Shown here: one piece after another, positions 7,699 through 63,204 of the stretch
How the letters are laid out: each line of letters opens with the position of its first letter
How positions within the stretch are numbered: the first letter of the stretch is position 1
The notes under the pieces: model-generated
Seen by the model: only the letters and a program-made list of their open reading frames with translations
The model's database searches: none
Told to the model about the DNA's origin: nothing
Program-made: the position numbers and the translations under genes
Virus record (IMG/VR): IMGVR_UViG_3300036781_000418
Span: 278,592 to 342,591 of that record
DNA length: 64,000 nt
Strand: one strand, 5' to 3'

Positions 7699-7999
7699 TC
7701 AACTGCTTGAGGCCGAAGACAAGCCAAAATGGAAAACTAGATCAGTTGAGGCCGCGCTGAAAAACGGCTACAACGAAATCTCGGACTTCATGTCTGGAAA
7801 GCTTAACATCAAAGGCTTTGCCGACTTCATCTCCAACATGGCCATGAGCCAGACTGAAAATTCGCGTGAAGCACGCGTGAAGTCAAATCTAGAAACTGCC
7901 GCAAGGCACATCTACAAGCACCTCAAGAAGGAAGGCAAGTACTCGGAAGAGGAGCTTGACGACTTGATGGACGCCATTGAAGAATTGGAAGAATCATGA
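7688..7999 (+). CDS. Hypothetical protein with capsid-targeting-like N-terminus
   Basis: MKIDQLLEA start matches the 56.4-59.3 kb family leader. Confidence 0.6.
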   Translation: MKIDQLLEAEDKPKWKTRSVEAALKNGYNEISDFMSGKLNIKGFADFISNMAMSQTENSREARVKSNLETAARHIYKHLKKEGKYSEEELDDLMDAIEELEES

Positions 8000-11523: not shown

Positions 11524-11546
11524 GCAAATCCAGTCATCCCGGCCCA

Positions 11547-11579
11547 TAGCTCCATAAATATCCTTGTAACTCGGAGCTA
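11547..11579 (+). promoter_or_regulatory. Late promoter (ATAAATA 11554-11560) inside an RBS-sequestering stem
   Basis: TAGCTCC (11547-11553) is complementary to GGAGCTA (11573-11579), which carries the SD. Confidence 0.6.
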
Positions 11580-11581
11580 AC

Positions 11582-12253
11582 ATGGACTACAAGAAGGCAC
11601 TGCCGCTAATCGACAAGTTTCTTGGATGGGTGTCCATCAAGCGCGTGGTCATGCTCGCGCTGATCATCGTGGTGTGCATCACCACCCAGACGATCTTTGA
11701 GAACCGGGCGCAGCTCAGCGAGGGTATCGCGGACCGTGGCAAGGAGCACAACGTGTTCGACGCCCCGATCAAGCTATCGAAGAACTCGGAAGAGGCGATC
11801 AAGAACCTCGTGAACAACCACTCAGAGATCCTGCTGGCGACCGTCATGTCTGTGAACATGCGCGCCCTGCAGCGGACCCCAGTCTTCTTCTACTCTGGCG
11901 ACGCACAGGTCACGAAGATGATTGACGGTCAGCTCTCCCAGCGCACTGGAACCCTCCCAATCTTTACGCACGATGAGAAGGCCGACGGCGAGATCGTCGG
12001 CCTTATGAACGGGGACTTCTCCTGCGTTAAATACTCGGACACCGTGAACGCCTCCATCTTCCCATCGCTGGTCGGGAAGGTAAAGCTGCTCTGCCGTGTT
12101 GGTCTTCCACCGTACAAGGGTAACTTCTCTGGGTACATCTCCTTGCTGGTGATGGACTTGAGCGGTCCGTACAAGGAAGACGAGATCCGCCTTGAGCTTA
12201 CCAAGGTCGCTACCGACATCTACCTGTCCGATGTCGTCGGCAAGCAACGTTAA
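11582..12253 (+). CDS. T4 holin-like single-TM/periplasmic-domain protein; paralogue 2
   Basis: Aligns with 10822..11523: (Y/F)ENRA, F(T/S)CV, CRxxxPP(F/Y)xxxF(A/S)GYI, RxExTxxAxxIYLxDVVxK. Confidence 0.5.
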   Translation: MDYKKALPLIDKFLGWVSIKRVVMLALIIVVCITTQTIFENRAQLSEGIADRGKEHNVFDAPIKLSKNSEEAIKNLVNNHSEILLATVMSVNMRALQRTPVFFYSGDAQVTKMIDGQLSQRTGTLPIFTHDEKADGEIVGLMNGDFSCVKYSDTVNASIFPSLVGKVKLLCRVGLPPYKGNFSGYISLLVMDLSGPYKEDEIRLELTKVATDIYLSDVVGKQR

Positions 12254-12273
12254 GGACAGATAAGGTCCACACC

Positions 12274-12486
12274 ATGCACATGGGAATGATTCCACTTCTA
12301 CTGCTGTTCATTACCGTCATTGGGGTGGTCGGCATCGTGCTGTATCGTACCATCTGGTGCCGCCTGTTTCGCCATCCGACTAACGACCGTCGTGAAGCGG
12401 AGCTTGACTTTGAAGGTCGAGACCGCCGTCGCGGCAACCGCACTGGAACGGCCGCAGACCGCAAGGACACAGTTCCCACGCCCTAA
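12274..12486 (+). CDS. Small membrane protein (one TM, basic tail), possible lysis accessory
   Basis: Hydrophobic N-terminus, Arg-rich C-terminus. Confidence 0.5.
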   Translation: MHMGMIPLLLLFITVIGVVGIVLYRTIWCRLFRHPTNDRREAELDFEGRDRRRGNRTGTAADRKDTVPTP

Positions 12487-12583
12487 ATAGGACTCACGTT
12501 GAATCTAAGGTTCGGGCCAATGTGCAAACATTCGGCCCGAGTTTGATTTGCGCGACTGTATAACACATAGTAGGATAGAACAA

Positions 12584-13039
12584 ATGGAACAACTAGACGA
12601 ACTCCAATATGAAAAGAAGCCACGAGCTGGCCTAATCCCGTACATCATGGGTCAGGATGGGCGGTACCGTTACCTGATGATGATCGCCTCTAACTCGAAG
12701 TTCGGTGGCCCAAGACCAATGATCTCCAAGGGCAAGATTGAGGAGGGTGAGACCCCCTACATCGCCGCGGTTCGCGAGGCCGAGGAGGAACTTGGGTTGA
12801 TCGCGTACAACATGAAGGGAACCCCCGCCCTCCTCACCGAGGAACAGGTCACCCTTCGATCCGGAACTTACTTCTTTACGGTGTACGCCGTGGAGATCTA
12901 CGATCGCTCCCTCTTCAACATGTGGTGTAGCGAGACGGAGTATACGGAGTGGTACACGCTCGACGAATTCCAACAACATGGACGACGCGATCACATCAAG
13001 TTCATCCAACAACTCGAACAACAGCTTAGACAAACCTAA
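12584..13039 (+). CDS. NUDIX hydrolase
   Basis: GKIEEGETPYIAAVREAEEELG Nudix box. Confidence 0.85.
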   Translation: MEQLDELQYEKKPRAGLIPYIMGQDGRYRYLMMIASNSKFGGPRPMISKGKIEEGETPYIAAVREAEEELGLIAYNMKGTPALLTEEQVTLRSGTYFFTVYAVEIYDRSLFNMWCSETEYTEWYTLDEFQQHGRRDHIKFIQQLEQQLRQT

Positions 13040-13052
13040 ATGAGATAGCATA

Positions 13053-13718
13053 ATGGCAAAGGTACTCTTCCTTGACAAATCAGGTCAACCACTTGACTGG
13101 GGCACGTGGCGTGACGCCGTGGAGCACTACGCTAAGGACCACGTGCTGTGGGAACTTGGCGACAAGAACCGTGAGTCGATCACGTTCCGTGGCGGGTTCA
13201 ACTGCAACGGCGATCAGTCAAAGATCTCGGTCGCACCGATCATCGCCTTGAACGGTGAGGCCACGGGTCGTAAGCGCTACAAGATCCCAACCCTGAACAA
13301 CCGGTACCTGTTTGCCCGTGACCGTTGGACCTGCGCGTACTGCGGCTCGACCAACCCCAACGAGTCAAAGCTGTCGTGCGACCACGTCGTGCCGCGTTCC
13401 CGTGGTGGCAAGGACATCTGGGAAAACGTCGTCACCTCCTGCGGTCCATGCAACAACTTCAAGGACAACTGGCTGTTGAGTGAAATTGGGATGGAGCTCA
13501 GGTACGTGCCGTACGTCCCGACACAGGCCGACATCCTGTTCATGGAGTCTCAGGGCATTCTCCCGAGTCAGGCCGAGTACCTGCTGCCGTTCTGCTCCGA
13601 GCGTGCTCGGCTCTCGTTCCAGGGCGTCGCGAACCAAGGTGGTCCCGCGTTGAACCACCTTGAAGAGGCGGCTCGGGCGGCTGGACCTCGTCGTTCGAAG
13701 GCACCGACCCGTAAGTAA
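13053..13718 (+). CDS. HNH endonuclease
   Basis: RDRWTCAYCG...DHVVPRSRGG...WENVVTSCGPCNNFK. Confidence 0.9.
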   Translation: MAKVLFLDKSGQPLDWGTWRDAVEHYAKDHVLWELGDKNRESITFRGGFNCNGDQSKISVAPIIALNGEATGRKRYKIPTLNNRYLFARDRWTCAYCGSTNPNESKLSCDHVVPRSRGGKDIWENVVTSCGPCNNFKDNWLLSEIGMELRYVPYVPTQADILFMESQGILPSQAEYLLPFCSERARLSFQGVANQGGPALNHLEEAARAAGPRRSKAPTRK

Positions 13719-27521: not shown

Positions 27522-29723
27522 TCAACGATCCTTCAGCGCCTCAACGTCAGCCTTCAGCTGTTCGATCATGGCCTGCTGTTCGTTCATTCCGGCAACCAAC
27601 AGTGAAACCAGCTTCTCGTAACGGACCGTCAGGTAGTCGTTGTTGAACGGCGCTGGCGCCACGGCGTCCGGCATAACTTGCATAACGTCCTGCGCGATGA
27701 GACCGTGTTCGTGCTCGTTCGCTGGCATGTAGCCAAGCTCGTTGCAGAGGTCCATCTTCCAGTCGTAGGTCACACCACGAATTGCCTTCACCTTGTCCAC
27801 GGCGTTCGTGATCACCTGCACGTTGTCCTTCAAACGGATGTCGGAGGCGGAGGCGGTGATGTTGCCCGTGGCGGTGATGTTGCCCGTGAAGGCGTGCGTC
27901 GTGCCGCCATTCAAGGCCACGTAGTTCATGGCCGTCGTGCCGGAACCGAGACCGATGTAACCCAGCTGCGTACCGCCTGAAGTCAGGAACTGCACCACAC
28001 CCGTGTTGGAGCCGTTGTTCGTGATGAAAACGGAGCCAATGCCAGCGTAACCAACCATCACCGAGCCGTCGACGTTGATCTGCGATTGGTTGTGCAGGAT
28101 ACCCGTCATCGTGTCGCCAGCCTTGGCGACATAGGTGCCGCTGATCGAGGCGTTCGTCACGTACCCAGCGTCGTTCGACAGCTGTGAGACGCTGGTAAGG
28201 TTCTGGTTGTTCCAGATGGTGGACCAAGCGGACCAGCTAGTTTGATCACTGGTATCGTCGTTCACTCGGAAGTAAAGGCCTGACGGCGCGCCTTCCTCCG
28301 CGTTCCAGTTGGCCGTGAGCTGCATGGAACGCACGCCACCTGGACCAATGGCTTGAATACCAACGTGGTACGGTGTTGGAAAGTCAGTAGCCGCCAACGC
28401 ATCGAAGCCGGCAATTGACAGTGATGGGAAAGTCAGTGGGCCTGGGGAAACGCCTGAGCCGAAGCTGTAGTACAGGACTGGAGCACCCGTCACGTTGGCG
28501 TAGGCGACCGACGAGGCCGTCGCGGCGTTGCCAGTAATGTTGATACCCCACGTGCCTGAAGCGCCACCACCCGTCAACGATGGCGAGTAAGACGTGTAGT
28601 TGCCGTCGGTGAGGAGGGTGCGCCAGCCGTTCCATGCATGTGCGTCGCCGTCACGTGTACGAATCTTGATGTCGTTACCACCAAGACCATAGGCTGCCAC
28701 GAGCTGAGCCGTGTACTCGAAGGTCGTGCCGCTGAGACCGCCGAAGGTGATGAACGGTCCAGTTGGTTCACCAGTGCCACCGTACGTAAAGCCAGTTTCC
28801 AGCTTCGTGATGGACGTGTTCATGGACGTGCCGTCAGCTGAACTGATACGAGCACGACGTTGCAAGATGGCCTTGTCTTCCGTGACACCACCCAACTGCG
28901 CCGAGTTCGTGGCGTTTGTGGCCGAGTTCGCGGTGTTGGCGTTCGTGGCGAAGCCGACCGACAGTGCGGACTGCAGTGCCCAGTACGGTGCCGCGTTGTT
29001 GCCAGACAGGAAGACCATGTCCGCGCTAGACGCGGCGGCTGCGAAGCCAAACGAGGAACCGGTGTCGGCGTACAAGACCCCACCTGAGACCACCGTCGAA
29101 CGACCAGTGCCGCCGTGTGAGACTGGCAGGACGCCGGCCGTGATGTTGCCGGCGTTTAGGTAGTACGTGCTGTCCTGGCCGTCGAGCAAGTCAGCGTCAA
29201 GACCAGAGCCAGCGCCGTCGTTGTTCGCGTGCCAGACTTGTACGCCGTTGTACTTCAGACCGGCGTTTCCAAGCGTGCCGTCGATAGTCAAGGCGACGGC
29301 GTTGAGGGTGCCGCCGTTGCCGCCCCACGAATCACCAAAGCCGATTTGAACTGCACCACCACCCGCCTGAATGATGGACGGACGGTTGGTGCCGGTCGAA
29401 TCCTGGTTACCGATGACGATGCGCTGCGGTCCAGACGTTTGGGTGATGCGCAGGTAGCCTGGCAACTCCAGCTGACCGGTCATCACGTCGCCGATCTTCT
29501 TCACGAACTGGCTAGGGTCGCCACCGACTTGCAGCCAGCCTTGGGTCAGCTGCGGTGAACCCGCACCGAAACCACCCGTGTAGCCGTAAAGGTAGACACC
29601 GGTGGTACCCAGCCCGTCGGCGTTGTTGGTCTTGTAGAAGGCCAGGCCGTCCGGGATATCGTTTGTGGATGGCAGCGTCGGACCGTATGGGAGCTGCGCG
29701 CCGCCGTTAAGCGTCTTTGACAT
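27522..29723 (-). CDS. Tail fibre with C-terminal intramolecular chaperone (peptidase S74)
   Basis: GSGLDADLLDG, KAGDTMTG, ASDIRLKDNV...GLIAQDV..P.AV..YEKL..coiled coil. Late promoter at 29756-29761. Confidence 0.9.
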   Translation of the reverse strand: MSKTLNGGAQLPYGPTLPSTNDIPDGLAFYKTNNADGLGTTGVYLYGYTGGFGAGSPQLTQGWLQVGGDPSQFVKKIGDVMTGQLELPGYLRITQTSGPQRIVIGNQDSTGTNRPSIIQAGGGAVQIGFGDSWGGNGGTLNAVALTIDGTLGNAGLKYNGVQVWHANNDGAGSGLDADLLDGQDSTYYLNAGNITAGVLPVSHGGTGRSTVVSGGVLYADTGSSFGFAAAASSADMVFLSGNNAAPYWALQSALSVGFATNANTANSATNATNSAQLGGVTEDKAILQRRARISSADGTSMNTSITKLETGFTYGGTGEPTGPFITFGGLSGTTFEYTAQLVAAYGLGGNDIKIRTRDGDAHAWNGWRTLLTDGNYTSYSPSLTGGGASGTWGINITGNAATASSVAYANVTGAPVLYYSFGSGVSPGPLTFPSLSIAGFDALAATDFPTPYHVGIQAIGPGGVRSMQLTANWNAEEGAPSGLYFRVNDDTSDQTSWSAWSTIWNNQNLTSVSQLSNDAGYVTNASISGTYVAKAGDTMTGILHNQSQINVDGSVMVGYAGIGSVFITNNGSNTGVVQFLTSGGTQLGYIGLGSGTTAMNYVALNGGTTHAFTGNITATGNITASASDIRLKDNVQVITNAVDKVKAIRGVTYDWKMDLCNELGYMPANEHEHGLIAQDVMQVMPDAVAPAPFNNDYLTVRYEKLVSLLVAGMNEQQAMIEQLKADVEALKDR

Positions 29724-29860
29724 GCGTTTTCCTACTTGTAGGTAGATAGATCGGCTATTTAGCTTCCGGCGTCCCAAGTTCATGATCTTGCAGTCCAATC
29801 GATGGGTTGAGGTCGTCGCCCAAAAATCTACAATCATCTGTACACGTTTATGGAGACCTA

Positions 29861-30862
29861 ATGTCAACCGGCTACCTCAATCAAGACTTCAAGCAGTGTC
29901 TCATCGACCTCAACACGCATGGCATCGTCAGCGCCCCACGTGGATCCGAGACGAAGGAGCTGCTGAACTACAACATCACCCTGCGCGATCCACGCAACCG
30001 CCTGATCACGATGCGCGATCGCAACACCAAGCTGCCCTACCTGCTGGGCGAGTTCATCTGGTACCTCGGTGGCTCGAATGAACCGACCGACATCCTGGCG
30101 TACTCGAAGTTCTGGGGACAGCTCACCAACGTCGGTGGACCTGAAGGTTACGCGGACGGCACGATCAACTCCAACTATGGCTACCGCTTCTTCGGCCACG
30201 ACAAGAACGCGGCGGTCGACCGCGGCTACGACGAGAAGACGTCGCAGTGGTACACGGTGGTCGACATCCTGTCCAAGGACAAGGACTCCCGTCAGGCCAT
30301 CATGAACGTGCACTTGCCCGCTGACCGCTGGGCTGGCAACAAGGACGTGCCGTGCACCCTGTCCCTGCAGTTCTTCATTCGTGACAACGCCCTGCACATG
30401 ATCGTGAACATGCGGTCGAACGACGTCATCTTGGGCTTCACCAACGACGTCTTCCAGTTCACCATGCTGCAGGAAGCGATGCTGCTCCAGCTCCAGCGCT
30501 TCTACCCGGACATTGAACTCGGCTTCTACTACCACAACGCCGGCTCGATGCACATCTACGACCGTCACTACGCCATGATGGACAAGATCATGGCCGACGA
30601 GACCGTGATCGACGTGTCCATGGTTCCGATGGACAAGTTCAACGACCAGATCATTCTGGGTCTGTACACGGTTGAGCAGGTCTGGCGTCAAGCTGGCATG
30701 AATCCCGACTTCGATCCGGCTACCGTCGGTGCTTGGGCCCTCCTGACGCCGTACTGGCAGAACCTCTTCCGCATGTGTTTCCTTGAAGACGCCGAGGCCT
30801 TCAGCTACATCTTCGGTGACACCCATGACGATCACGTTCACGGTGAGCACTGTGAGCACTGA
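29861..30862 (+). CDS. Thymidylate-synthase homologue, dCMP hydroxymethylase/hydroxylase-like (T4 gp42-type)
   Basis: INSNYG, DSRQA, KDVPCT, MRSNDVILGFTND (Asp at the cytosine-specificity position), GSMHIY. Confidence 0.8.
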   Translation: MSTGYLNQDFKQCLIDLNTHGIVSAPRGSETKELLNYNITLRDPRNRLITMRDRNTKLPYLLGEFIWYLGGSNEPTDILAYSKFWGQLTNVGGPEGYADGTINSNYGYRFFGHDKNAAVDRGYDEKTSQWYTVVDILSKDKDSRQAIMNVHLPADRWAGNKDVPCTLSLQFFIRDNALHMIVNMRSNDVILGFTNDVFQFTMLQEAMLLQLQRFYPDIELGFYYHNAGSMHIYDRHYAMMDKIMADETVIDVSMVPMDKFNDQIILGLYTVEQVWRQAGMNPDFDPATVGAWALLTPYWQNLFRMCFLEDAEAFSYIFGDTHDDHVHGEHCEH

Positions 30863-37111: not shown

Positions 37112-38272
37112 ATGAACATCGGTGTTATCAAGCTTGGCGCCCGCATCACCTGGGAAACCGACGCCGCCGTCGGACCAGGCGAGGCCATTTCCATCTGCAA
37201 GGCCCTCCAACGCGGTGGCGCCAACGTCAGCGTCCTCACGAAGATTCTGCCCAAGGACACGCTTCACCCGTCGCTGACGTGGAAGAACATCCTCGAGGCG
37301 ACGACCGCTGACTCGCTCGAGCACCTTGATCACCTGATCGTCGTCAACGGCAACGTGAACTTCTTCGGCGGGGCCGAGGACGAAGCCCAGATCGCGAACT
37401 ACACGGTGATCAACAACTTCCCAGGCAAGGTCACCTACGTGATGTGCGACCCTGAGCTGCCACTTATGCAGATTTGGGGCAACGTGTCCGGCAAGGAGTG
37501 GGGCTCGAAGTACGCCGAGGCCGACATTAACATCACCCGCCCTGACATCAGCGTCCTGTCGCAGCCGTTTGCCACCGACAAGGTGCGTGAACGCTGGAGC
37601 AAGAAGAAGGGTGCGGCACCGATCGGCAACTTCTTCCACTTCCCAATGGAGCGTTTTCCACTGCTGAACGAGTGGCTGCCACCCAACCCAACTCCACAGG
37701 TTGATCTCATGTACGGCGGCACGACTCGGGGCGGTCGCAGAATTCCTAACCTGTTGAAGTGGTACGTTGACTTGCCTGAGGACATCAGCGTTAACGTCTT
37801 TGGCAAGATCGATCGCGATGACTTTACCAAGCATCCAAAGTACGTACCACAGGTGATGCAGTTGGATCAGCCAGCTGATCATCGCTGGCCAGTGTTTACT
37901 GGCATGGTGAAGTACTGTAGCGTCCTGCCAAAGATGAACACGGCCTTGGCCCACCTGGTTACTGGCGACCCGTCCTACGAGGTGTTGGACATCATTCCAC
38001 AGCGCGCCATGGAGTGCATTGCCGCCGGCAACGTTGTCTTCGTGGACGCGAACATGGACTCCTCACGTCGCATCTACCCAACAGGACTTGCACGCGAGTT
38101 CCTGTACGTGACCAACCAAGCTGAGCTGGTTGAGAGGTTGCGGCAGGTAAAGTCCAACGACGGACTGCGCCAACAACTCATTGCTTCGCAGGTCGCTGAA
38201 ACTCGCTTTGACGCTGACGAATTTTGTCAGAGTCTGGTTACAACCTTGAAGGCACAACGATGGACACGATAA
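37112..38272 (+). CDS. DNA beta-glucosyltransferase homologue (T4 BGT family glycosyltransferase)
   Basis: Colinear with T4 BGT as recalled: DHLIVVNGNVNFFGG, CDPELP..IW.NV, SQ, FP.E, DLMYGG..RGGRR. Confidence 0.8.
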   Translation: MNIGVIKLGARITWETDAAVGPGEAISICKALQRGGANVSVLTKILPKDTLHPSLTWKNILEATTADSLEHLDHLIVVNGNVNFFGGAEDEAQIANYTVINNFPGKVTYVMCDPELPLMQIWGNVSGKEWGSKYAEADINITRPDISVLSQPFATDKVRERWSKKKGAAPIGNFFHFPMERFPLLNEWLPPNPTPQVDLMYGGTTRGGRRIPNLLKWYVDLPEDISVNVFGKIDRDDFTKHPKYVPQVMQLDQPADHRWPVFTGMVKYCSVLPKMNTALAHLVTGDPSYEVLDIIPQRAMECIAAGNVVFVDANMDSSRRIYPTGLAREFLYVTNQAELVERLRQVKSNDGLRQQLIASQVAETRFDADEFCQSLVTTLKAQRWTR

Positions 38273-39113: not shown

Positions 39114-39436
39114 CGCCCAAGCTCCTCGCTCGTCACATCAAGATCGACAAGTGGGGCACTAAGGCGTACGTGACTGGGGACGGTCGGGTGTTCAAGCGGG
39201 TATTGGGCAGCGCACATGATGTCGTTCAAGTTGGTAAACCGTGCTGGTTGATCCACCACCTTGGCCTACACCACGGTGAAGTCTGGCGCTACGAGCTCTA
39301 TGAGGTGATCATTGATTGCTGGGACGCCGAGTTGCCGGAGTTACCACGCACATGGTACCGCAAAGGCCGGTTCTTGGTGTACGAAGACCCAAACTTCAGG
39401 TTACCAGTACTCGCCAACGTCATACAATCAAGGTGA
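39110..39436 (+). CDS. Hypothetical protein
   Basis: Coupled ORF. Confidence 0.45.
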   Translation: MTPKLLARHIKIDKWGTKAYVTGDGRVFKRVLGSAHDVVQVGKPCWLIHHLGLHHGEVWRYELYEVIIDCWDAELPELPRTWYRKGRFLVYEDPNFRLPVLANVIQSR

Positions 39437-39453
39437 ATCATACAGGAGACACC

Positions 39454-40101
39454 GTGAAGTTCACGCGCCCCACCATCGTCCTCATCACCGCCCCGACCTG
39501 TTCGGGCAAGACCCACCTGCTTGAACACCTCATAAAGGAGGGCCTGTTTGCACGAGTGGTTGGTACCACGACGCGACCACGGCGCCAAGGTGAGGTGGAC
39601 GGCGAGACCTACCAGTTCGTCTCCAAAGACGAGTTTAGTTACATGGCTGACCATGGCAAGTTCACGCAGACGGTCACGTTCAGCGGCAACTCCTACGGTG
39701 TGACCACGGCGGCGTTGGACAAGGCTGCTGAAACTGGACTGGCGCCCGCCATTATCGTCGAACCAACTGGCATCGGCCAGTACCGCCAATTTGCGTACAG
39801 CAGTGGAATGTGGGACGTTTTCCAGATCTACGTTTCCACTGAGCAGAAAGTCTGCCTGCAGCGGTTGAACCAGCGGACGCTGGCCGACCTTGACAAGGCG
39901 CTCAACGCTGTGGAACGCACCAAGCTCATGGAAGTCCACACCACCCGCACCAAGTCGATTCTGCAGGATGAAGCTGGTTGGCAGGCCAAGTCAACGTGGA
40001 ACGTCATCGCACCTGGAGACGACATTGAAGGCGCCGTGCTGATGATCAAGGCGGGCATTTACCAGCAGAACCGCAGGGTCTTGGACGGAACGCTCGTATG
40101 A
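39454..40101 (+). CDS. Guanylate kinase-like protein
   Basis: APTCSGKT, TTTRPRRQGEVDGETYQFVS, GNSYG; GTG start with AGGAG. Confidence 0.85.
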   Translation: MKFTRPTIVLITAPTCSGKTHLLEHLIKEGLFARVVGTTTRPRRQGEVDGETYQFVSKDEFSYMADHGKFTQTVTFSGNSYGVTTAALDKAAETGLAPAIIVEPTGIGQYRQFAYSSGMWDVFQIYVSTEQKVCLQRLNQRTLADLDKALNAVERTKLMEVHTTRTKSILQDEAGWQAKSTWNVIAPGDDIEGAVLMIKAGIYQQNRRVLDGTLV

Positions 40102-54489: not shown

Positions 54490-55073
54490 ACTCGTTCATC
54501 GTCGACGACCGTATCCGCGCAGTTAAGGCGTTCTTGACCACAAGCCCCAACTACACCAAGCCGCACGCGAACCACCCCAAGTTCTCGACGGCCATCTTCA
54601 AGGCTGTGAAGAACGCCTATGAGCGGGCGGCGCGTGAAGGTTGGGGTACAATCTACTGGGCCGTCGACCTACATGACACGGTGATCATGCCGTCGTACCA
54701 GCCAGGTATCATTGGTCAATCCTACCCCTTTGCGCTGGACACGCTCTACTGGTTGTTGTCGTTCCCCGAGACTGGCATCATCCTCTGGTCGTCAATGTCA
54801 AAGGAAGAGTTGGCGCGGCACCGCAGCGTGCTCTTTGAAGGTGTGGCTGACCATGAAGTCCGGGTCTTCCTCAACGAGAACCCCGACATCGGCGCGACGC
54901 GGTACGCGAACTTCGATCAGAAGATGTACTTCAACATGCTGCTGGACGACAAGGCCGGCTTCGACCACACTACAGACTGGCAGCTTATCCAGGAGGCGGT
55001 CAACTACTACCGGCCGCGCAACATTGACCGGATGATCAGCGACGAGTTCATTGAAGTGACCGAGCACGCATGA
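54486..55073 (+). CDS. HAD-superfamily phosphatase-like protein
   Basis: AVDLHDTV, LWSS, NENP, LLDDKAGF. Confidence 0.7.
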   Translation: MNSFIVDDRIRAVKAFLTTSPNYTKPHANHPKFSTAIFKAVKNAYERAAREGWGTIYWAVDLHDTVIMPSYQPGIIGQSYPFALDTLYWLLSFPETGIILWSSMSKEELARHRSVLFEGVADHEVRVFLNENPDIGATRYANFDQKMYFNMLLDDKAGFDHTTDWQLIQEAVNYYRPRNIDRMISDEFIEVTEHA

Positions 55074-55927
55074 AGCCCGCACATGAAGTCCTCGGCATCG
55101 GCAAAGGCTCCTCCGCCGAGGAGGCCAAGACGGCCTACAAGCGCCTCGCCTCCAAGTACCACCCTGACAAGCACCCTGAAGCCGAGAAGCTCGAGTGGGA
55201 GCAGAAGTTCAAGGAGATTGGCGAGGCGCTGAAGTGGTTTGAAGAGCGTGAGACGGGCAAGACCAACGTGTGGCAGGACTTCAGTGGTGGCGGTAGGCCC
55301 TACACCAACAGCGACATGGCTGACATCCTACGTGCGTTCGCCGAGTCGCACAACCGTGACTATCAAAACCGAGTCGTGCCGATCAATCTCACGGTTGACC
55401 TGCAGCTCGCCTTCACCGGCGGTACGGTCGGTGTCACCCACCGCGGCCGGTCCTACGGCTTCGTCCTCAAGGCTGGCTTGCCGCAAGGCTCCACCTTCAC
55501 CGACGAGCTGCCCACGCCCGAAGGTGCCATCAAAGTGTTGGTCACAACCAACTTCACCAGCAAGGAATATCGGTTCCTCGCCGACAACAACGGCACCTTC
55601 CTGTCCGGTGACCTTGAGAAGGTCGTGTCCATCCACGCCGCGACGATCATGGTCGGCGGCCACGTGCAGGTGAGTGACCTGTCGAACAAGACCTTCGAGG
55701 TGCGCGTGCCGAAGGGCTTCGACATCACCAACCGCCTGAAGCTAAAGGGCCGTGGCTACACCGCCTACAACACAGGTGGCAGCGCGACCGGTCGTGGCGA
55801 CCTCTACATCGTCCTCAAGCCCACCTTCAAGATGGCGGCGATGGCGGAAGAGTCCCTCCACTGGTTGGCGGCCGCGATCGAAGAAGAGGTGAACCGTCGT
55901 GGCGAAGAAGCCAGCCCCAAAGAGTGA
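55070..55927 (+). CDS. DnaJ/CbpA-like co-chaperone
   Basis: J domain with YHPDK; C-terminal LKGRG...GDLY; no Zn finger. Confidence 0.85.
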   Translation: MKPAHEVLGIGKGSSAEEAKTAYKRLASKYHPDKHPEAEKLEWEQKFKEIGEALKWFEERETGKTNVWQDFSGGGRPYTNSDMADILRAFAESHNRDYQNRVVPINLTVDLQLAFTGGTVGVTHRGRSYGFVLKAGLPQGSTFTDELPTPEGAIKVLVTTNFTSKEYRFLADNNGTFLSGDLEKVVSIHAATIMVGGHVQVSDLSNKTFEVRVPKGFDITNRLKLKGRGYTAYNTGGSATGRGDLYIVLKPTFKMAAMAEESLHWLAAAIEEEVNRRGEEASPKE

Positions 55928-56489
55928 CCTCACCGGCTTTGACTTCGACGACGTACCGTACGAGGGGTTGAAGAAGGTTATCTCAGGCGGGCAGACCGGT
56001 GCCGACATTGCCGGGCTCTACGCCGCTCGTGAACATGGCCTTGAGACCGGTGGTCAGGCGCCTGAGGGGTACTTGACCACGGTGGGCTGCATGCCCGAGC
56101 TGGCGGACTTCGGCCTCACGGCTGCCGGGTCGTACTCACAACGGACCCTGGTGAACGTGAAGTCTTCAGACGCGACACTTGTCCTGAGCAACAACCCGGG
56201 TTCGACCGGGACCGCCCTCACGATCAAGTACTGCGTTCAGCAGCGGAAGCCGTATCTGCTCGTGCACACTACTGAGTTCATACAGCATACGGCGACACGA
56301 GGCGACGCCGGCGTCGCGCCGTCTGAGGAGTTAATAGGCTCTGTGGTCGAGTTCATTCGGCGACACCGGTGCACCACCTTAAACGTCGCCGGAAACCGTG
56401 AACGCCACAGCGATCAACGGATCACCATGGCGTGCTTTGACGCCTGTTACAAAGTCTTTCAGGCTATTCGTCCGGCATCCCGTCCTTGA
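55899..56489 (+). CDS. SLOG-family 'putative molybdenum carrier' (cpYpsA-like) protein
   Basis: VISGGQTGADIAGL, RT..NV..SDATL, GTALT, LNVAGNRE. Confidence 0.8.
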   Translation: MAKKPAPKSDLTGFDFDDVPYEGLKKVISGGQTGADIAGLYAAREHGLETGGQAPEGYLTTVGCMPELADFGLTAAGSYSQRTLVNVKSSDATLVLSNNPGSTGTALTIKYCVQQRKPYLLVHTTEFIQHTATRGDAGVAPSEELIGSVVEFIRRHRCTTLNVAGNRERHSDQRITMACFDACYKVFQAIRPASRP

Positions 56490-56844
56490 TCCACTGCTTG
56501 TACAGTCCGATCATCCTCTTAAGGTCACCAACAAGCTCGCGGTCGTTGGCTGGAGCCCGCGCAGCCTTGAATGTTTGGACAATAACGTACAGGTGAGCTT
56601 TATCGTCGTAGTCGTAGACGATCACCGCCACATGGTCCCAACGGCCGCTAAAATAATTAAGCTCCACCGTTCCATGGAGCTTGCCTTCAATTTTATTTTT
56701 AGCCGCCAAGACTGGAGGGTCTCCGTCGAAGTGTTCAACGACAAACCCTTCACGCTCAAGGTATGGCTTGAGCACCTCAAGCGTTTCCATGGCACCATCT
56801 GGATCATGATGCGCTTCGCCTTCAAGCAGGTGGTCAAGCTTCAT
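56464..56844 (-). CDS. Putative internal head protein, array member 6
   Basis: MKLDHLLEG leader. Confidence 0.6.
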   Translation of the reverse strand: MKLDHLLEGEAHHDPDGAMETLEVLKPYLEREGFVVEHFDGDPPVLAAKNKIEGKLHGTVELNYFSGRWDHVAVIVYDYDDKAHLYVIVQTFKAARAPANDRELVGDLKRMIGLYKQWIKDGMPDE

Positions 56845-57220
56845 TCTGTTCTTCCACGTAGCGGTCAACCGCCGTCATAAGGCGCTTGAAGAGCTTAGCG
56901 GCGTCGCCGGAATCCGTCGGCGTTCCACCGTTAAACTTCTTGGCCTTTTCATTAGGGTCGTCAAGCTGTGAATAGTCATGAATGATGCCCTCTACGGCCA
57001 ACCAGGTGCCCTCATAAAAGAGGGTGCCGAGCACGCAGATGTAGGGCAGGTTTTTAATCCTGACTTCCTTCATGCAGTGGATACCAGCACTGATGTTGTC
57101 CTTACTGTTGCCAGTGACGTTGGTGTCGTACCCATGCTTGCGCGCGTAGACGGCAAAGACCTCAAACGTGTCATGCACGTCGGATAGATCTTCTTCTTCA
57201 AAGAGAACGTTCAACTTCAT
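56834..57220 (-). CDS. Putative internal head protein, array member 5
   Basis: MKLNVLFEE leader. Confidence 0.6.
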   Translation of the reverse strand: MKLNVLFEEEDLSDVHDTFEVFAVYARKHGYDTNVTGNSKDNISAGIHCMKEVRIKNLPYICVLGTLFYEGTWLAVEGIIHDYSQLDDPNEKAKKFNGGTPTDSGDAAKLFKRLMTAVDRYVEEQNEA

Positions 57221-57660
57221 TTGCCACCCTTAAATGCAGCTTCAAACTTATCCAGCTTCTTTGTGTAGGCCGCGACGTCAACCTTCAGCAGCTTCTTCAG
57301 CATTGGAATGACGGACGTGACGGCAATGCCCTGGTGTTTAACGATTGGAAAGTGCGCCTTGCTCAACAGCCCAGTGCTTGGCTCATACGTGTCAAGCTCC
57401 ACGGTCCAAGCTGAGTCGTCGTCCTTCTTGAAGTCGTGGTAGATAACGAACGACATTACAAGGTGACCGGAGTTCATCTCCCACTTGCGAGTAGATACGT
57501 AAGTGTGGTAGAACAACTGGTCGTTGTTAGCAGACTTGCGCATTCGAACGTCGCTCTTGAAGCCGTACGACTTCAGGAACTTGCTGAACAGCATCATATT
57601 CAGCTCGACCTCATCGTGGTCCTCTTCAAATAGGTGATCAAGTAGGGTTTGAAGCTTCAT
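57217..57660 (-). CDS. Putative internal head protein, array member 4
   Basis: MKLQTLLDHLFEE leader. Confidence 0.6.
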   Translation of the reverse strand: MKLQTLLDHLFEEDHDEVELNMMLFSKFLKSYGFKSDVRMRKSANNDQLFYHTYVSTRKWEMNSGHLVMSFVIYHDFKKDDDSAWTVELDTYEPSTGLLSKAHFPIVKHQGIAVTSVIPMLKKLLKVDVAAYTKKLDKFEAAFKGGK

Positions 57661-58115
57661 GCTCTGTTTGCTTTCTCAAATTCAGCTTGCTTGGCGTCCA
57701 GCTCCTTAACCATGGTTGGAACAAGCTTAAGCACCTTGTCAATTGCTTGTAGCACCTGCTTTACGTCGAGATCACGAGCTTTAAACGAGCTAAAGCCATG
57801 GCGCTCTTTATTGTCGAAGACCTCACCATTGTCCTCGTCAAGCACACTTGCGAAAATCGTCCAAGTGTTCTTATTAGGCTCACAATAGATGATGACGTTT
57901 AGCACCACTTCGCCGCGCGCAATCTTCCAGATCTGCCAATCGTTGTAGTTGAAGTAGACGGCTGGATGGACGCCAGGACGTTTAACTGGATCGTAAATTA
58001 CTGTCTTCTCAAAGTTGTGCTTCTGCATGTACTTGATGAACAACTTCAAGTCCGTTGACGCGTCCTCTGGATCGTAGTCGGCGTGATCGTTTTCTAGGAG
58101 CAGGTCGAGTTTCAT
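57657..58115 (-). CDS. Putative internal head protein, array member 3
   Basis: MKLDLLLEN leader. Confidence 0.6.
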   Translation of the reverse strand: MKLDLLLENDHADYDPEDASTDLKLFIKYMQKHNFEKTVIYDPVKRPGVHPAVYFNYNDWQIWKIARGEVVLNVIIYCEPNKNTWTIFASVLDEDNGEVFDNKERHGFSSFKARDLDVKQVLQAIDKVLKLVPTMVKELDAKQAEFEKANRA

Positions 58116-58723
58116 GGAAACTTCTTCTTAAAAGTTTCGATATACTTCTTAGCTACCTCGAAGGCCTCTTCAGGCGTCTTAATGTTTTGGCGAGCACCGC
58201 CAATGATGTACTTCTTGTCGTACTTTTCAACGTTGTGGAAGCGTACGCTTTGAGTGCCGTGAAGGTGTTGAATGAAACTGTTGGTACGAACAGCCCACAC
58301 CCCGTGTTCAAACTCAGCAACTACTGTGAATTTTAGCTCGCCATCAACGTGCGTGACTTCATCCTCAACCCACTGGCTACTCGTGGTATCGTAGTATTTG
58401 ACCCGTGTAACTGGCACCACCCACTTACCGATTGCGTGACCACTGACGGCGTGCTTTGCCGCTGAATGAGTTGCAATACGCGGCACCGTAAACCCATTCG
58501 TCTTAAACATTGCCGCGATCAGCTTAAGTGACGTTGTAACGTCTTCAACGTCAATTTGGTCGGTGAACTGGGCCAGCACCCTGTTGAGCTCACTGTTTCC
58601 AGCGCCAGCCACGATGAACTTGGTAAACTCTGCACGACACTTCAAGAACTGCTCGTCCGTCAGCTCGTCAATAATGTTCTTTTTCGTCTTGCCAATAGCT
58701 TCTAGCAACTGATCAAATTTCAT
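58112..58723 (-). CDS. Putative internal head protein, array member 2
   Basis: MKFDQLLEA leader. Confidence 0.6.
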   Translation of the reverse strand: MKFDQLLEAIGKTKKNIIDELTDEQFLKCRAEFTKFIVAGAGNSELNRVLAQFTDQIDVEDVTTSLKLIAAMFKTNGFTVPRIATHSAAKHAVSGHAIGKWVVPVTRVKYYDTTSSQWVEDEVTHVDGELKFTVVAEFEHGVWAVRTNSFIQHLHGTQSVRFHNVEKYDKKYIIGGARQNIKTPEEAFEVAKKYIETFKKKFP

Positions 58724-59274
58724 TTTGGGTACTTCTTGTTGAACTTTGCGATGATACTACGAATACCAACCAAGGCGGCCGAGGCGTCTTCTACCTTTGG
58801 TGTGGTTATAGGCTTGTCGATGTCGTTATGGCTACGAGTATCCGACGCGGCGGTTGGGTAAGCCGCCACCTCCCACTGTGCGTTGGAATATTCAACGCGC
58901 AAGATGCCTTGGATGGTGTGCATGTTTGGATAGTTGGCACCGGTAGGCCGCTGTGGAAATTCTGCCACCAACACACCCATTGGATTCTTGTAACGGTCCA
59001 GCACGATTTTGTTTCGAGTGACCTCAAGGTCTTCTTGTTCAATGGCCTTCTGGAACAAGTCAAGGTCCACTTGCACGTCGTCCACGTTAACCTCAATGTT
59101 CTTGATCTGCACCAGCAGCGCGTCAATTTCACTGTTGGTCAAGCCGGAGCCAATGATGTTCAGCAGGTGCTCCTTGTTGTCCAGCAACTCCTTGTCGGTG
59201 ATTGTTGCCAGCTTTTTGAGCTTGCTTGGATTGGCGTCCTTAAGAAACGCCTCCGACAGGTGTTCAAATTTCAT
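58720..59274 (-). CDS. Putative internal head protein, array member 1
   Basis: MKFEHLSEA leader; late promoter at 59297-59302. Confidence 0.6.
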   Translation of the reverse strand: MKFEHLSEAFLKDANPSKLKKLATITDKELLDNKEHLLNIIGSGLTNSEIDALLVQIKNIEVNVDDVQVDLDLFQKAIEQEDLEVTRNKIVLDRYKNPMGVLVAEFPQRPTGANYPNMHTIQGILRVEYSNAQWEVAAYPTAASDTRSHNDIDKPITTPKVEDASAALVGIRSIIAKFNKKYPK

Positions 59275-59296
59275 GACTGATCCAGGTTTAAACGTC

Positions 59297-59326
59297 TATT
59301 TAGACAACAGCTGGGCGCCGTAAATA
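59297..59326. promoter_or_regulatory. Divergent late promoters (TAAATA on minus at 59297-59302, on plus at 59321-59326)
   Basis: TAAATA boxes, each inside a short palindrome (GTCTATTTAGAC; GCCGTAAATACGGC). Confidence 0.6.
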
Positions 59327-59350: not shown

Positions 59351-60178
59351 ATGAGCGCCTACAAGACCCTTGGTATTCCCGAAGGTTCCACCGTCGAGGT
59401 AGCCAAGGCCGCCTACCGCAAACTTGCCATGAAGAACCACCCCGACCATGGTGGCAACGCGGAGACGTTCAAGACGATCAAGTTGGCCTGGGAGGACATC
59501 GAGGCTGGTCGTGTCAAGGCTGCGCCACCGCCCTTCACCGGTTCGACCTCGTTCGGCGACATCCCAAAGCGGCGCCCAGCACCGAAGTCGGCGTACCAGC
59601 ACACGCCCGGCAACCGCCGTCCACGTGACGAGATGCCGCGGATCTACACTCGCACGATCGGCACCAAGCCGCAACACTTCTGCGACATCTACATCACGGA
59701 GGAGCAGGCTTTCGACGGCTGCTTCGTGCCAATCCTGAACGGCAAGGAGCAGATCGACTTCATCATTCGTCCAGGCTGTGGTCAAGGCTCGATCAGCGAG
59801 ACTATCCGCGGCTCCAACGTCATCGGCGCCATGGTCAGTTCGCTGACCGTCCAGTTCAACATCTACATCGTGCACGAGGCGGAAGCCGACGAGGTGCGCA
59901 AGGACATGGAGCTGAACGTTTCCATCTCGGCGCTGGCCTTGCTGGTCGGTGCGACCTTCGGCGTCTCGGACGCGAAGGGGGTACGTGTTGAAGTCACGGT
60001 GCCGCCTGGCTACGACCCAGCCCAGAAGCTGCGTGTCGCTAACCGAGGCTACGGTCCTGACGGCGGGCGCGGTGACCTCCTGCTCTTTCTCAAGCCGGTC
60101 TGGACCAACCCAACCAGCTTCACACCGGTCGAGCGTCAGCTCGCCGTCAACCTCTACACGATGATCAACCAAAAGTAA
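59351..60178 (+). CDS. Second DnaJ/CbpA-like co-chaperone
   Basis: YKTLG..AYRKLAMKNHPDHGG; C-terminal LRVANRG..RGDL. Confidence 0.85.
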   Translation: MSAYKTLGIPEGSTVEVAKAAYRKLAMKNHPDHGGNAETFKTIKLAWEDIEAGRVKAAPPPFTGSTSFGDIPKRRPAPKSAYQHTPGNRRPRDEMPRIYTRTIGTKPQHFCDIYITEEQAFDGCFVPILNGKEQIDFIIRPGCGQGSISETIRGSNVIGAMVSSLTVQFNIYIVHEAEADEVRKDMELNVSISALALLVGATFGVSDAKGVRVEVTVPPGYDPAQKLRVANRGYGPDGGRGDLLLFLKPVWTNPTSFTPVERQLAVNLYTMINQK

Positions 60179-60225: not shown

Positions 60226-60504
60226 ATGAAGATCATCTCAACCGACGCCATCGTCCTTCAGCCGCAGACCAACCACCATGACCTCTTTGAGCTGTTCAAG
60301 GTCGTCGCCGCCAGCGACACCTTGATCGAGTTCACCGTAGATTCGCAGGTTGATCCGGCCGAGTTTCGCGTCGTCGTTGCCGATCAGCTTGGTCAGGAGT
60401 TCATGGCGTTGTCCATGCCTGCCGATGAACCCATCACGATCTCAGACCTCGTACAGCTCTTTGATCGGTTGGGCTACGACACCGACATCAACTACCTTAC
60501 ATGA
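60226..60504 (+). CDS. Hypothetical protein
   Basis: AGGA RBS; TAGAAT upstream. Confidence 0.5.
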   Translation: MKIISTDAIVLQPQTNHHDLFELFKVVAASDTLIEFTVDSQVDPAEFRVVVADQLGQEFMALSMPADEPITISDLVQLFDRLGYDTDINYLT

Positions 60505-61448
60505 GAAACAACGCATTTACCTGGGAAACCAAGCTTCACGCTCTGTTCAACGACATCATCCTGATGGGCGATGAACGAGCTGACCGCACTGGAACTGGCA
60601 CGCTGGCCATGTTCGGCGGCAACCTAACTATCGACCTATCGCGCGGTTTCCCAATGGTGACTACCAAGGCGATGACCTTGCGCCCAATCGTGAGTGAGCT
60701 GCTTTGGTTCTGTGAAGGTTCGGGCGACGAACGTCGGCTGGCTGAAATTCACCACGGTACACGTGACCGATCCAAGCGAACCATTTGGTCGCCGAACGCC
60801 GACGCTACCACGGGTTCTAAGTACACGCCTAAGCAGTATGGTGACCTTGGTGAGGTCTATGGGGTTCAGTGGCGACACTGGCCAACCGTAGACGTCAAGG
60901 AGTACGGCGACTTCATGGAACATCCAGCGGGTGGTACCACGTACTTCAACGCCAAGGTGACGACTGGAGAAGTCGATCAGCTTCAAGCTCTGATCGACGG
61001 CCTGAAGAACGATCCACATGGTCGCCGTCATATCTTGTCCGCCTGGAACGTTGGGCGGCTTGACAAGATGGCGCTACCACCATGCCACATGATGGCCCAG
61101 TTCTACTTGAACAACGCTGGTTACTTGTCCTGTCAGATGTACCAACGTTCAGTGGACACGTTCCTTGGTCTTCCGTTCAACATCGCGTCCTACGCTGCGC
61201 TGACGCATATGATCGCCCACCTAATTGGTGCGAAGCCTGGTGCGTTGAAGATCGTCATGGGTGACACCCACATCTACAAGGATCACCTTGACCAAGTCCA
61301 ACTTCAGCTCAAGCAAGAGATCAAGGACGCACCGAAGCTAAGACCGTTTAGAGACGACATCAAGTCGATTGAGGACTTTTCCATTGATGACTTTGTCCTT
61401 GAAGGCTACACACCTGGAATCAAGATCACTGGAGCCATGTCGGCATGA
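60501..61448 (+). CDS. td: Thymidylate synthase (canonical, dUMP-specific)
   Basis: DRTGTGT, ELLWF, VYGVQWR, SAWN, MALPPCH, YQRSVDTFLGLPFNIASY, HIY. Confidence 0.95.
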   Translation: MRNNAFTWETKLHALFNDIILMGDERADRTGTGTLAMFGGNLTIDLSRGFPMVTTKAMTLRPIVSELLWFCEGSGDERRLAEIHHGTRDRSKRTIWSPNADATTGSKYTPKQYGDLGEVYGVQWRHWPTVDVKEYGDFMEHPAGGTTYFNAKVTTGEVDQLQALIDGLKNDPHGRRHILSAWNVGRLDKMALPPCHMMAQFYLNNAGYLSCQMYQRSVDTFLGLPFNIASYAALTHMIAHLIGAKPGALKIVMGDTHIYKDHLDQVQLQLKQEIKDAPKLRPFRDDIKSIEDFSIDDFVLEGYTPGIKITGAMSA

Positions 61449-61954
61449 GCAAGTCACGCAGCGTCTACCTTTCTTTGCTGCTCAGGCACCAGCCTGAGAA
61501 GGCCAACCTCACCTTGGACAAGGAGGGCTGGGTCACCCTTGAGCAGCTCACCGCCAACACCGACTTCACCGTGCCTGAGCTCGAGGTCATCGTGGCTGAG
61601 GACCAGAAGACTCGGTACTCAATCAAGGACGGCAAGATTCGCGCCAACCAGGGCCACTCCACCGACGTCCAGCTGACCTTCAAGAAGGTCACCCCACCAA
61701 CCGTCCTGTACCATGGCACGCCACGTAAGTCGGTCGAGGTCATCCGCAAGGAGGGCCTTAAGCCGATGTCGCGTCACCACGTCCACCTCAGCGCGTCCTA
61801 CCCAACGGCCGAGCAGGTCGGTGGTCGTCGAGGCAGCGCCGTGGTGCTCATCATCGACACCTTCAAGATGGTCTCGGACGGCGTCCAGTTCTACATCTCC
61901 GACAACGGGGTTTACCTCGTTGACCACGTTCCTTCAAAGTACATTACCGTATGA
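61445..61954 (+). CDS. kptA: RNA 2'-phosphotransferase (Tpt1/KptA)
   Basis: LLRHQP, KTRY, IRANQGHS, LYHGT, RHHVHLS, NGVYL. Confidence 0.93.
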   Translation: MSKSRSVYLSLLLRHQPEKANLTLDKEGWVTLEQLTANTDFTVPELEVIVAEDQKTRYSIKDGKIRANQGHSTDVQLTFKKVTPPTVLYHGTPRKSVEVIRKEGLKPMSRHHVHLSASYPTAEQVGGRRGSAVVLIIDTFKMVSDGVQFYISDNGVYLVDHVPSKYITV

Positions 61955-62244: not shown

Positions 62245-62744
62245 ACCGCAAGATCATCATCAACCGCTTCATCCGTCCACTGCGGATCGACGACCGCGGT
62301 GAGCTGGTGACGGACGAGTTCGGCGGAGTCGGCCTCCAATTTCACGGGGTGGAAGAAGGGGTTGAGACTCGTTGGTGGGCGGTGGGAACCTTCCTGGCAC
62401 GCGACACCAAGTTCGCCCGCTCGACGGCCGCCAACGTCTTGACGAAGCTGGCCCAGACTGAGAGCCTCAACGGGGTGAGTGAACGGCTGGTCTTCGGTTC
62501 AACTACCGACAACCTCGTCCAAGAGTTTACCGACTGGGCGGACGCGTACGTCACCAGCGTGGAGAAGCACGGCTGCATCACCGCGTTGGAGCTCTACCGA
62601 AGCAGCCACCTGCAGAAGCTGCTTGAGCAGCTGGTAATCCTTACGTGTGAGAACGACATCATCACTGAGCTTCACGTGAACCTGATGAAGAGCTTGGAAG
62701 GAACGGCGAAAGAATATGACGACGAAGCAAACCCAACTGGGTGA
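62241..62744 (+). CDS. Hypothetical protein
   Basis: ATGA-coupled 167-aa ORF. Confidence 0.5.
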   Translation: MNRKIIINRFIRPLRIDDRGELVTDEFGGVGLQFHGVEEGVETRWWAVGTFLARDTKFARSTAANVLTKLAQTESLNGVSERLVFGSTTDNLVQEFTDWADAYVTSVEKHGCITALELYRSSHLQKLLEQLVILTCENDIITELHVNLMKSLEGTAKEYDDEANPTG

Positions 62745-63204
62745 CATTACATCAGTCTCGAAGGGGATCATCATCCACCAGGTGAACGCCCAAGGCCTGA
62801 TGGGTAGTGGTGTGGCGCTGGCCCTTCGGCGCCGGTACCCGTCCATCTTCGACGACTACGCCGAGGAGATCAAGCCACGCCAGCCCAACCACGCCTCCGC
62901 GCTGTACATGGGTCGGTTGATCATGAGCACGGTGGGTGAGAACCTGAGGGTGGCTCAAATCGTCGGCCAGCAGTTCTGCGGTTCAGACGGGTTGAAGTAC
63001 ACCTCGTACGACGCCCTCGACGCCGGTCTGACGCACCTTGCCGACTGGATCGAAACTCGCGTGGACAACGGTGACATGCCCGCACCGCACATCCACTACC
63101 CACTGATCGGCGCCGGCCTTGGTGGTGGAAACTGGGAGGTGATCGAGCAGATCATCGCCCACCGTCTGGCTCGGTACGAACGGACCCTATGGCGCTTTAT
63201 GTGA
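62716..63204 (+). CDS. Macro domain (ADP-ribose/Appr-1''-p processing) protein
   Basis: GDIT, HQVNAQGLMGSGVA, TSYDAL, PLIGAGLGGGNW. Confidence 0.88.
   Translation: MTTKQTQLGDITSVSKGIIIHQVNAQGLMGSGVALALRRRYPSIFDDYAEEIKPRQPNHASALYMGRLIMSTVGENLRVAQIVGQQFCGSDGLKYTSYDALDAGLTHLADWIETRVDNGDMPAPHIHYPLIGAGLGGGNWEVIEQIIAHRLARYERTLWRFM

Follow-up and report, generated by a model that had tools for sequence, protein, structure and literature searches.

An eight-residue N-terminal leader shared by a six-gene cassette and dozens of other genes in a T4-related jumbo phage: a candidate head-targeting tag

Introduction

With the proteins that it packages in its head and injects together with its DNA, a phage makes its first move against the host. 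As they have no conserved sequence, head-packaged proteins are, to our knowledge, almost unknown outside T4, P1 and the phiKZ group. The internal proteins of T4 carry a capsid-targeting sequence (CTS) of 10–19 N-terminal residues; the one that has been studied is the 10-aa peptide MKTYQEFIAE, in which targeting depends on residues 4 and 7 and processing on residues 8 and 10 (PMC9026906; PMC8442874), and the protease gp21 cuts after L/I-x-E (PMC9026906). The phiKZ-like giant phages (phiKZ, 201phi2-1, SPN3US) process paralogous head-internal proteins with a diverged relative of the T4 prohead protease, which cuts after Glu (PMC9026906). Here we analyze a stretch of 64,000 nucleotides (the window) from the IMG/VR record IMGVR_UViG_3300036781_000418, and within it a cassette of six minus-strand genes, g1–g6, whose products all begin with related eight-residue peptides that we call the leader. 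Coordinates are those of the window unless they are given as genome positions.

The record is that of an uncultured virus of 342,591 bp with direct terminal repeats and a GC content of 0.57, and the window is its final 64 kb. We judge the chances to be about even that the leader is a T4-CTS-like tag for head targeting and cleavage, carried by a rapidly diversifying family of cargo proteins. A first-pass annotation of this DNA had read the cassette as a tandem array of diverged paralogues with capsid-targeting-like leaders, a putative set of injected effectors. Its observation is confirmed and its interpretation as a whole is partly supported: a prohead protease, a matching site in the capsid protein and the late-promoter units in which most leader genes lie all speak for a capsid-targeting-like leader. 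The leader itself proves to be spread over unrelated protein bodies throughout the genome and the clade, and the cassette is no special locus but one of at least seven leader arrays.

Results

The leader recurs across the genome on unrelated proteins

The gene set used here comes from a crude longest-open-reading-frame (ORF) caller, and the counts of leader genes are therefore approximate. Genome-wide, about 40 ORFs start with M-(K/R/N)-(L/I/V)-x-x-L-(L/F/H)-E, most of them in tandem arrays. The leader is far beyond chance: of the 463 crude ORFs, 19 match a strict N-terminal pattern, whereas the internal frequency of the same pattern predicts 0.06. The consensus drawn from 28 strict leaders is M-K-L-(D/N)-(H/Q)-L-(L/F)-E. 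Leader arrays lie at genome positions 11444–13658, 75611–77821, 86359–88248 (four genes), 133888–135356, 208702–211806, 214320–215183 and 335055–337865, the last of these being the cassette under study. The window holds another leader gene outside the cassette, at 7688–7999 (+; genome 286279), which encodes a 103-aa protein starting with MKIDQLLE.

Stripped of their first 10 residues, the leader proteins fall into several groups that share no blastp similarity with one another. One group, which we call family I, comprises g3, g4, the four genes at genome 86359–88248 and one more; a second consists of g1 and g2; a third is made up of leucine-rich-repeat (LRR)-like proteins, whose array at 133888–135356 follows directly after the capsid gene; a fourth contains proteins of 280–295 aa; and there are many singletons. 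This division into unrelated groups indicates that the tag is modular and not merely inherited. The LRR-like paralogues, which lie at genome 133888–135356 and also at L022:291–1109, start with MKLQQLHE, MKIKQLHE and VKIHQLHE, and two of them stand directly downstream of the capsid gene behind a late-promoter-like motif of their own (described below). A 394-aa leader protein with an Amidoligase_2 domain (MKLDVLFE; genome 95164–96348, minus strand) is encoded just downstream of a tail-tube-like gene, with the sheath gene a short way further downstream. Some leader genes lie among tail genes, either adjoining the sheath and tube genes or following a tail-tube-like gene.

The conserved Leu and Glu of the leader are encoded by freely varying synonymous codons, and selection therefore acts on the leader peptide and not on the RNA. 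A role as an RNA-level or translation-initiation element was considered and rejected on this ground.

The leader ends in a motif that matches the capsid cleavage site

The capsid protein of the phage has 52% identity with its counterpart in Ralstonia phage RsoM2USA, 45% with those in Xanthomonas phage XacN1 and the Stenotrophomonas phages CM1 and RAS14, about 39% with those in RaK2-like phages and up to 70–78% with those in uncultured IMG/VR relatives. By these sequence comparisons the phage belongs on the XacN1/RsoM2USA/RaK2 side of the T4 superfamily and outside the phiKZ group. Its head module is of the T4 type, with a portal, a prohead protease, a coiled-coil scaffold protein and a gp23 capsid protein. 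The protease, of the Peptidase_S77 family, is encoded at genome 129743–130354 (+; PF03420, 88.9 bits) and the capsid protein at genome 131661–132947 (PF07068, 287 bits); between their genes lies that of the gp22-like scaffold (genome 130711–131637, +).

In 14 related phages, the propeptide boundary of the capsid protein has a conserved site, (L/M/I)-x-E with (T/S)-A behind it, at the position where maturation cleavage is expected. The leader ends in L-(L/F)-E at residues 6–8 and so matches the L-x-E of the capsid propeptide. Within the cassette, five of the six products have L-(L/F/S)-E at residues 6–8; g4 has L-L-D there and then L-F-E at residues 10–12. The head proteins of this phage also have leader-like N-termini and L-x-E sites of their own (scaffold ..ILQKLLESE.., protease MQQILKE.., capsid MHQLLKE..), which recall the LIE-9 site of T4 gp21.

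These features suggest how a head-targeting tag might work. The motif M-K-(L/F)-x-x-L-(L/F)-E would be a modular tag on many late proteins in this T4-related jumbo phage clade, and the six cassette genes would be one late operon of diverged paralogues, each a small helix/beta-sheet/helix protein. The tag would first dock its protein onto the scaffolding core of the prohead; the gp21-type prohead protease would then remove it after the Glu, with Leu at P3 and Glu at P1; and the mature protein would stay inside the head until it departs with the DNA during infection. In both sequence and copy number the bodies change fast, which is what one expects of proteins that meet variable host factors. 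We infer targeting, cleavage, packaging, ejection and function alike from sequence.

Leader genes are over-represented in units behind a late-promoter-like motif

Across the genome, the 100 nt that precede gene starts are enriched about 10-fold in the motif NTAAATA. An extended form, NTAAATA(G/C), occurs at 111 sites, 76 of which lie within 150 nt upstream of an ORF on the same strand, typically 22–32 nt before the start codon. At this distance the motif precedes the genes for the sheath, tube, prohead protease, tail fibre and other large structural proteins; for the scaffold gene, whose annotated start is a GTG, the distance is 62 nt. Most structural genes are among those with such a site. 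Because of this placement before structural genes, NTAAATA behaves like a T4-type late promoter. In the window, two large proteins that resemble tail fibres or decoration proteins are each encoded behind such a motif, at 3342–6200 (−) and 27522–29867 (−); the second has a C-terminus like that of a long-tail-fibre distal subunit.

Units headed by NTAAATA contain 30 of 42 leader genes and 115 of 424 other genes, a difference whose nominal significance (Fisher p = 2e-8) overstates the case because genes within one array are not independent. The cassette itself has a single late-promoter-like CTAAATA at 59297–59303 (−), 22–23 nt upstream of the g1 ATG, and no second NTAAATA-type motif was found anywhere inside it, so that the proposal of one late promoter ahead of all six genes holds as a statement about sequence. 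The motif before g1, together with the enrichment of leader genes in such units, suggests that the cassette may be expressed late, alongside the head genes.

The cassette is a compact, lineage-specific set of overlapping genes

The six ORFs occupy 56464–59274 on the minus strand, opposite to the surrounding conserved block of nucleotide-metabolism genes. The first gene, g1 (58720–59274), encodes a protein of 184 aa with the leader MKFEHLSE, and the ATG of g2 (58112–58723; 203 aa, MKFDQLLE) overlaps its stop codon in an ATGA. They are followed by g3 (57657–58115; 152 aa, MKLDLLLE), g4 (57217–57660; 147 aa, MKLQTLLD followed by HLFEE), g5 (56834–57220; 128 aa, MKLNVLFE) and g6 (56464–56844; 126 aa as counted from the ATG at 56844, MKLDHLLE). 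An alternative TTG start at 56868 would give g6 eight extra residues, and its 3' end overlaps by 26 nt with the convergent gene for a circularly permuted YpsA (cpYpsA) protein. Four of the five junctions are 4-nt ATGA overlaps and the fifth, between g5 and g6, is an overlap of 11 nt, so that the six genes are translationally coupled. The GC content is 0.47–0.52 in the cassette and 0.57–0.62 in both flanks, or 5–10 points lower inside. All this agrees with the first-pass annotation, which had described six overlapping or coupled genes, visibly more AT-rich than their surroundings, with N-termini of the form MK(L/F)xxL(L/F/S)(E/D).

On either side of the cassette lie DnaJ-like paralogues, each with a J domain and a DnaJ C-terminal domain, at 55070–55927 (+) and 59351–60178 (+). 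In a close IMG/VR relative, G002, the two DnaJ-like genes lie side by side; because the cassette is absent from this syntenic spot, it is a lineage-specific insertion or expansion. A search for relatives that used the flanking DnaJ gene as its query found none.

The chaperone-like neighbors bear on another account of the leader, in which it would be an uncleaved docking tag for a partner other than the head core, be it a phage chaperone, an assembly hub of the tail or baseplate, or a host protein, and the leader proteins would do their work inside the cell late in infection or on the outer surface of the virion. A tag that is modular, selected as a peptide and associated with late genes would fit any docking signal, and the positions of some leader genes, between DnaJ-like genes here and among tail genes elsewhere, would suit such partners. 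The DnaJ flanking is not conserved, however, as G002 illustrates, and LRR-like leader genes directly follow the capsid gene. Moreover, the invariant Glu and the P3 Leu, at a fixed distance from Met1, reproduce both the conserved capsid propeptide site and the specificity of the T4 protease family. We therefore regard the docking account as rather unlikely, though not negligible, next to a head-targeting and cleavage tag.

The six proteins are old paralogues with one fold class in the modelled members

By blastp, the six proteins form a chain of similarities: g1 to g2 (6e-7), g3 to g4 over their full length (2e-8), g3 to g6 (1e-4) and g5 to g6 (0.01). The most diverged of the six, g5, is recovered by the family-I profile. 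The g1/g2 pair, which shares an N-terminal extension, is joined to the other members solely via the first core helix (hhalign, 25 columns, probability 80%). The claim of diverged paralogues with a shared helix is thus borne out, and by these comparisons the paralogy of the cassette is real but old.

An AlphaFold2 (AF2) model of g3, built from an alignment of eight sequences, has a pLDDT of 71 and a pTM of 0.66, and the ESM Atlas model has a pTM of 0.80. In order, the AF2 model contains a short leader helix of low confidence, an acidic linker, a helix at residues 16–31, an antiparallel beta-sheet and a long C-terminal helix. In the AF2 model of g1 (pLDDT 69), residues 1–62 form low-confidence helices, including the helical extension of about 50 aa, and the high-confidence core at residues 64–181 consists of a helix, four strands and a helix. 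The leader is a detached, low-confidence helix outside the core in both AF2 models. A Trp opens the last long strand in each (W134 in g1, W85 in g3); the Trp strand that had been proposed as a feature of all six proteins is therefore seen in these two models, and for g4–g6 it depends on an ambiguous alignment.

The two models retrieve the same structural neighbors, all of them weak: Med17C (Z of 6.8 for g3 and 9.4 for g1), the TriTu immunity protein (Z of 6.4 and 8.2), capping protein, frataxin, type III secretion chaperones and PsiB, with Z scores at the level that the tool gives as typical background (7–8). In Atlas searches, DUF932 came up near both models, and matches to TriTu and a feature hit to PsiB came up for g3 only. 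For TriTu (PDB 7zhm, PF24689), the Z score covers the whole 87-aa chain, the Foldseek E value is 0.2 and there is no Pfam match. Foldseek searches against the PDB and BFVD returned nothing significant (E of 0.02 or worse). The models support one shared fold class, helix/beta-sheet/helix, for the two modelled members; the neighbors define a fold class only, and no family membership or function follows from them.

Sequence relatives are scarce. Pfam and PHROG scans of the six proteins gave nothing above noise; neither blastn with the region nor tblastn with g3 found a match in 50,697 phage records; when g3 and the g1/g2 profile were run in word-indexed searches against 5.8 billion proteins, they returned self-matches only; and a family profile had no match among PDB sequences at E ≤ 5. 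The g1/g2 profile found no homologue outside the genome under study, and the family-I profile had no match in RsoM2USA or in any of five relatives from IMG/VR. When the family-I profile was searched exhaustively against 1.84 billion representative proteins, it recovered only three foreign homologues (E = 7e-8 to 5e-5), and all three are headed by the leader.

The lack of database homologues for g1 and g2, the want of strong Shine-Dalgarno sequences and a GC content below that of the flanks could all be taken to mean that the ORFs are not real genes, or that their N-terminal likeness is an RNA or translation-initiation element. We consider this extremely improbable, since the frames are open, coupled, in one orientation and behind one promoter motif, family-I homologues occupy a syntenic place in other phages, the predicted folds are confident in the core, and synonymous codons are freely exchanged at the conserved Leu and Glu.

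The leader persists in related phages while the bodies diverge

Leaders in different phages were counted with the DNA-level pattern M-K-(L/V/I/M/F)-x-x-(L/F)-(L/F)-E, for which a reversed-pattern control gave 0 matches in every record. There are 17 matches in this genome, 9 in G002, 10 in the close relative G003 (five of them in tandem), 7 in the close relative G004 and 1 in the close relative G001, whose record is 87% complete. Among distant cultured relatives, four of five have one or two matches: RsoM2USA, Salmonella phage Munch and Vibrio phage 2.275.O have one each and RAS14 has two. The single match in XacN1 lies inside a topoisomerase gene and was rejected as a false positive. In G002, which has a GC content of only 0.45, the leader consensus is MK(L/V)x(E/D)LFE and the bodies are unrelated to those of the studied phage. 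The leader is kept where capsid proteins are only about 39–45% identical and the bodies are unrelated. Whatever its role, an 8-residue N-terminal peptide that recurs across some 40 otherwise unrelated genes and in related phages is an unexplained signal.

IMG/VR jumbo phage relatives have tandem arrays of their own, with five leader genes of the MKLxQLFE type and unrelated bodies, at 167384–170139 in G003 and at 4019–7304 in the locus L064, where the array adjoins the capsid gene. The only virion proteome found for a relative, that of RsoM2USA, covers just 10 gel bands and is uninformative here; it does not include the product of its single leader gene, ORF405.

Two of the foreign family-I homologues stand in tandem on a 243-kb contig of a metagenome-assembled genome (MAG), in the same place as the 86359–88248 array of the studied phage, namely after a tail-tube-like gene and before a head-closure (gp4-like) gene, near the sheath gene. 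Between the two phages the flanking genes are 61–77% identical and the family-I members about 28%, and the copy number is two on the contig and four in the studied phage. The family evolves much faster than the genes next to it, and this difference, along with the missing cassette in G002, upholds the earlier description of a diversifying family.

The same material could also be read without any signal at all, as a single ancient superfamily of paralogues, extremely diverged and made up of late or host-takeover proteins of the cytoplasm, whose first helix would be the slowest-evolving part, kept for instance for oligomerisation or partner binding. Many small members do have a leader, an acidic linker and a helix, the two that were modelled share an alpha/beta sandwich and retrieve the same neighbors, and tandem arrays point to duplication. 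Against common descent, the leader is also found on the LRR-like, Amidoligase_2 and 280–394-aa proteins, which have no detectable similarity to the small family; it is retained between phages with distant capsid proteins although the bodies are unrelated; and it lies outside the folded core in the models, at low confidence. We find this explanation unlikely.

Neighboring genes and predicted DNA modification

Besides the DnaJ-like paralogues, the neighbors of the cassette include the circularly permuted YpsA protein of the SLOG superfamily (55899–56489, +), a Tpt1/KptA RNA 2'-phosphotransferase (61445–61954, +) and a macrodomain protein (62716–63204, +). The last is weakly like the DNA ADP-ribosyl glycohydrolase DarG (E = 3e-14, under the curated cut-off) and might possibly counter a DarT-type defence.

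The cassette had earlier been linked to a phage with glycosylated cytosine, glucosyl-hydroxymethylcytosine being the substrate of the restriction enzyme GmrSD. The window encodes a divergent ThyA homologue that is closest to CMP/dCMP hydroxymethylases (29807–30862, +) and a homologue of the T4 beta-glucosyltransferase (37112–38272, +; PF09198, 80.6 bits), and because both are present, glucosylated hydroxymethyl-pyrimidine DNA is plausible. The premise of sugar-modified DNA in the earlier claim has, to this extent, the support of gene content. A guanylate-kinase-family (dNMP-kinase-like) gene at 39316–40101 (+) adds to the suggestion. A second candidate hydroxymethylase at 60501–61448 (+) was rejected, because the NCBIfam cut-off identifies its product as an ordinary thymidylate synthase. 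The first-pass annotation had further proposed that the cassette proteins are co-injected anti-defence factors, on the model of the T4 protein IPI, which blocks GmrSD; no homology that would suggest such an activity emerged from the searches above, and none of the findings bears on GmrSD or on another defence system.

Discussion

Several findings weigh against a head-targeting role for the leader. The motif L-x-E is short and common by chance, and it gains weight only from its fixed position and its conservation. No late motif was detected in the own unit of 12 of the 42 leader genes. The mature leader proteins are mostly acidic and have acidic N-terminal linkers, unlike the basic IPII and IPIII of T4. 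Pfam, PHROG and PDB profile searches revealed no homology to any known internal protein. Lastly, a cargo of about 40 species would be far above the handful in T4 and unprecedented for a T4-type phage.

If the head-targeting reading is extended to the whole clade, the eight-residue M-K-L-x-x-L-(L/F)-E would be an address label that loads dozens of different proteins into the prohead and is then removed by the maturation protease, a proposal in which our confidence falls somewhat short of even. In this genome the label would mark about 40 proteins, or about 9% of genes, among them small alpha/beta binders, LRR-like proteins and an amidoligase. If this is true, the sequence would be enough to list the whole injected cargo, with the tandem arrays as its diversifying arsenal. 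A leader that can be read in this way would make the cargo predictable without culturing the phage in this environmental jumbo clade, would mark a large set of orphan families, the cassette included, as candidate host-interaction or anti-defence proteins, and would offer a short natural tag for loading proteins into large capsids. The rapid divergence, the change in copy number and the small binding-protein-like fold fit a host-interaction role, without identifying one.

Comparison with known systems

In the arrangement of helix, antiparallel sheet and helix, the modelled cassette proteins are like small alpha/beta-sandwich proteins such as TriTu, PsiB, frataxin/CyaY, the type III secretion chaperones and DUF932, but the scores are at background level and no sequence signal links these proteins to g1 or g3. 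The phiKZ group shares with the studied phage a giant genome and large sets of paralogous head-internal proteins, which the leader proteins would be here. There the cleavage motif is S/A-x-E, without a fixed N-terminal octapeptide, whereas the leader has Leu at P3, and a PHROG scan found no similarity between the cassette proteins and inner-body or ejection families of the phiKZ type.

The T4 system, in which a CTS is found on IPI, IPII and IPIII and also on Alt, gp67 and gp68, differs in scale and in composition. The T4 CTS has 10–19 residues and heads a handful of genes, whereas the leader has 8 residues, a consensus of its own and about 40 genes in many tandem arrays; IPII and IPIII of T4 are basic, whereas the bodies behind the leader are mostly acidic. 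No homology to IPI, IPII or IPIII was found in the Pfam and PHROG scans or in the PDB profile search (E ≤ 5), and the mature form of IPI (IPI*) is not among the Foldseek or structural neighbors. What the two have in common is a short N-terminal MK... peptide that ends in hydrophobic-x-Glu, a gp21-type protease with a gp22-like scaffold and a gp23 capsid protein, genes that are late or, in the studied phage, predicted to be late, and proteins that are small, non-conserved and rapidly varying; the studied phage, judging by its gene content, probably also has glucosylated hydroxymethyl-pyrimidine DNA, as T4 does. The cassette set belongs to no known internal-protein family, yet it is the CTS and internal-protein system of T4 that it resembles most.

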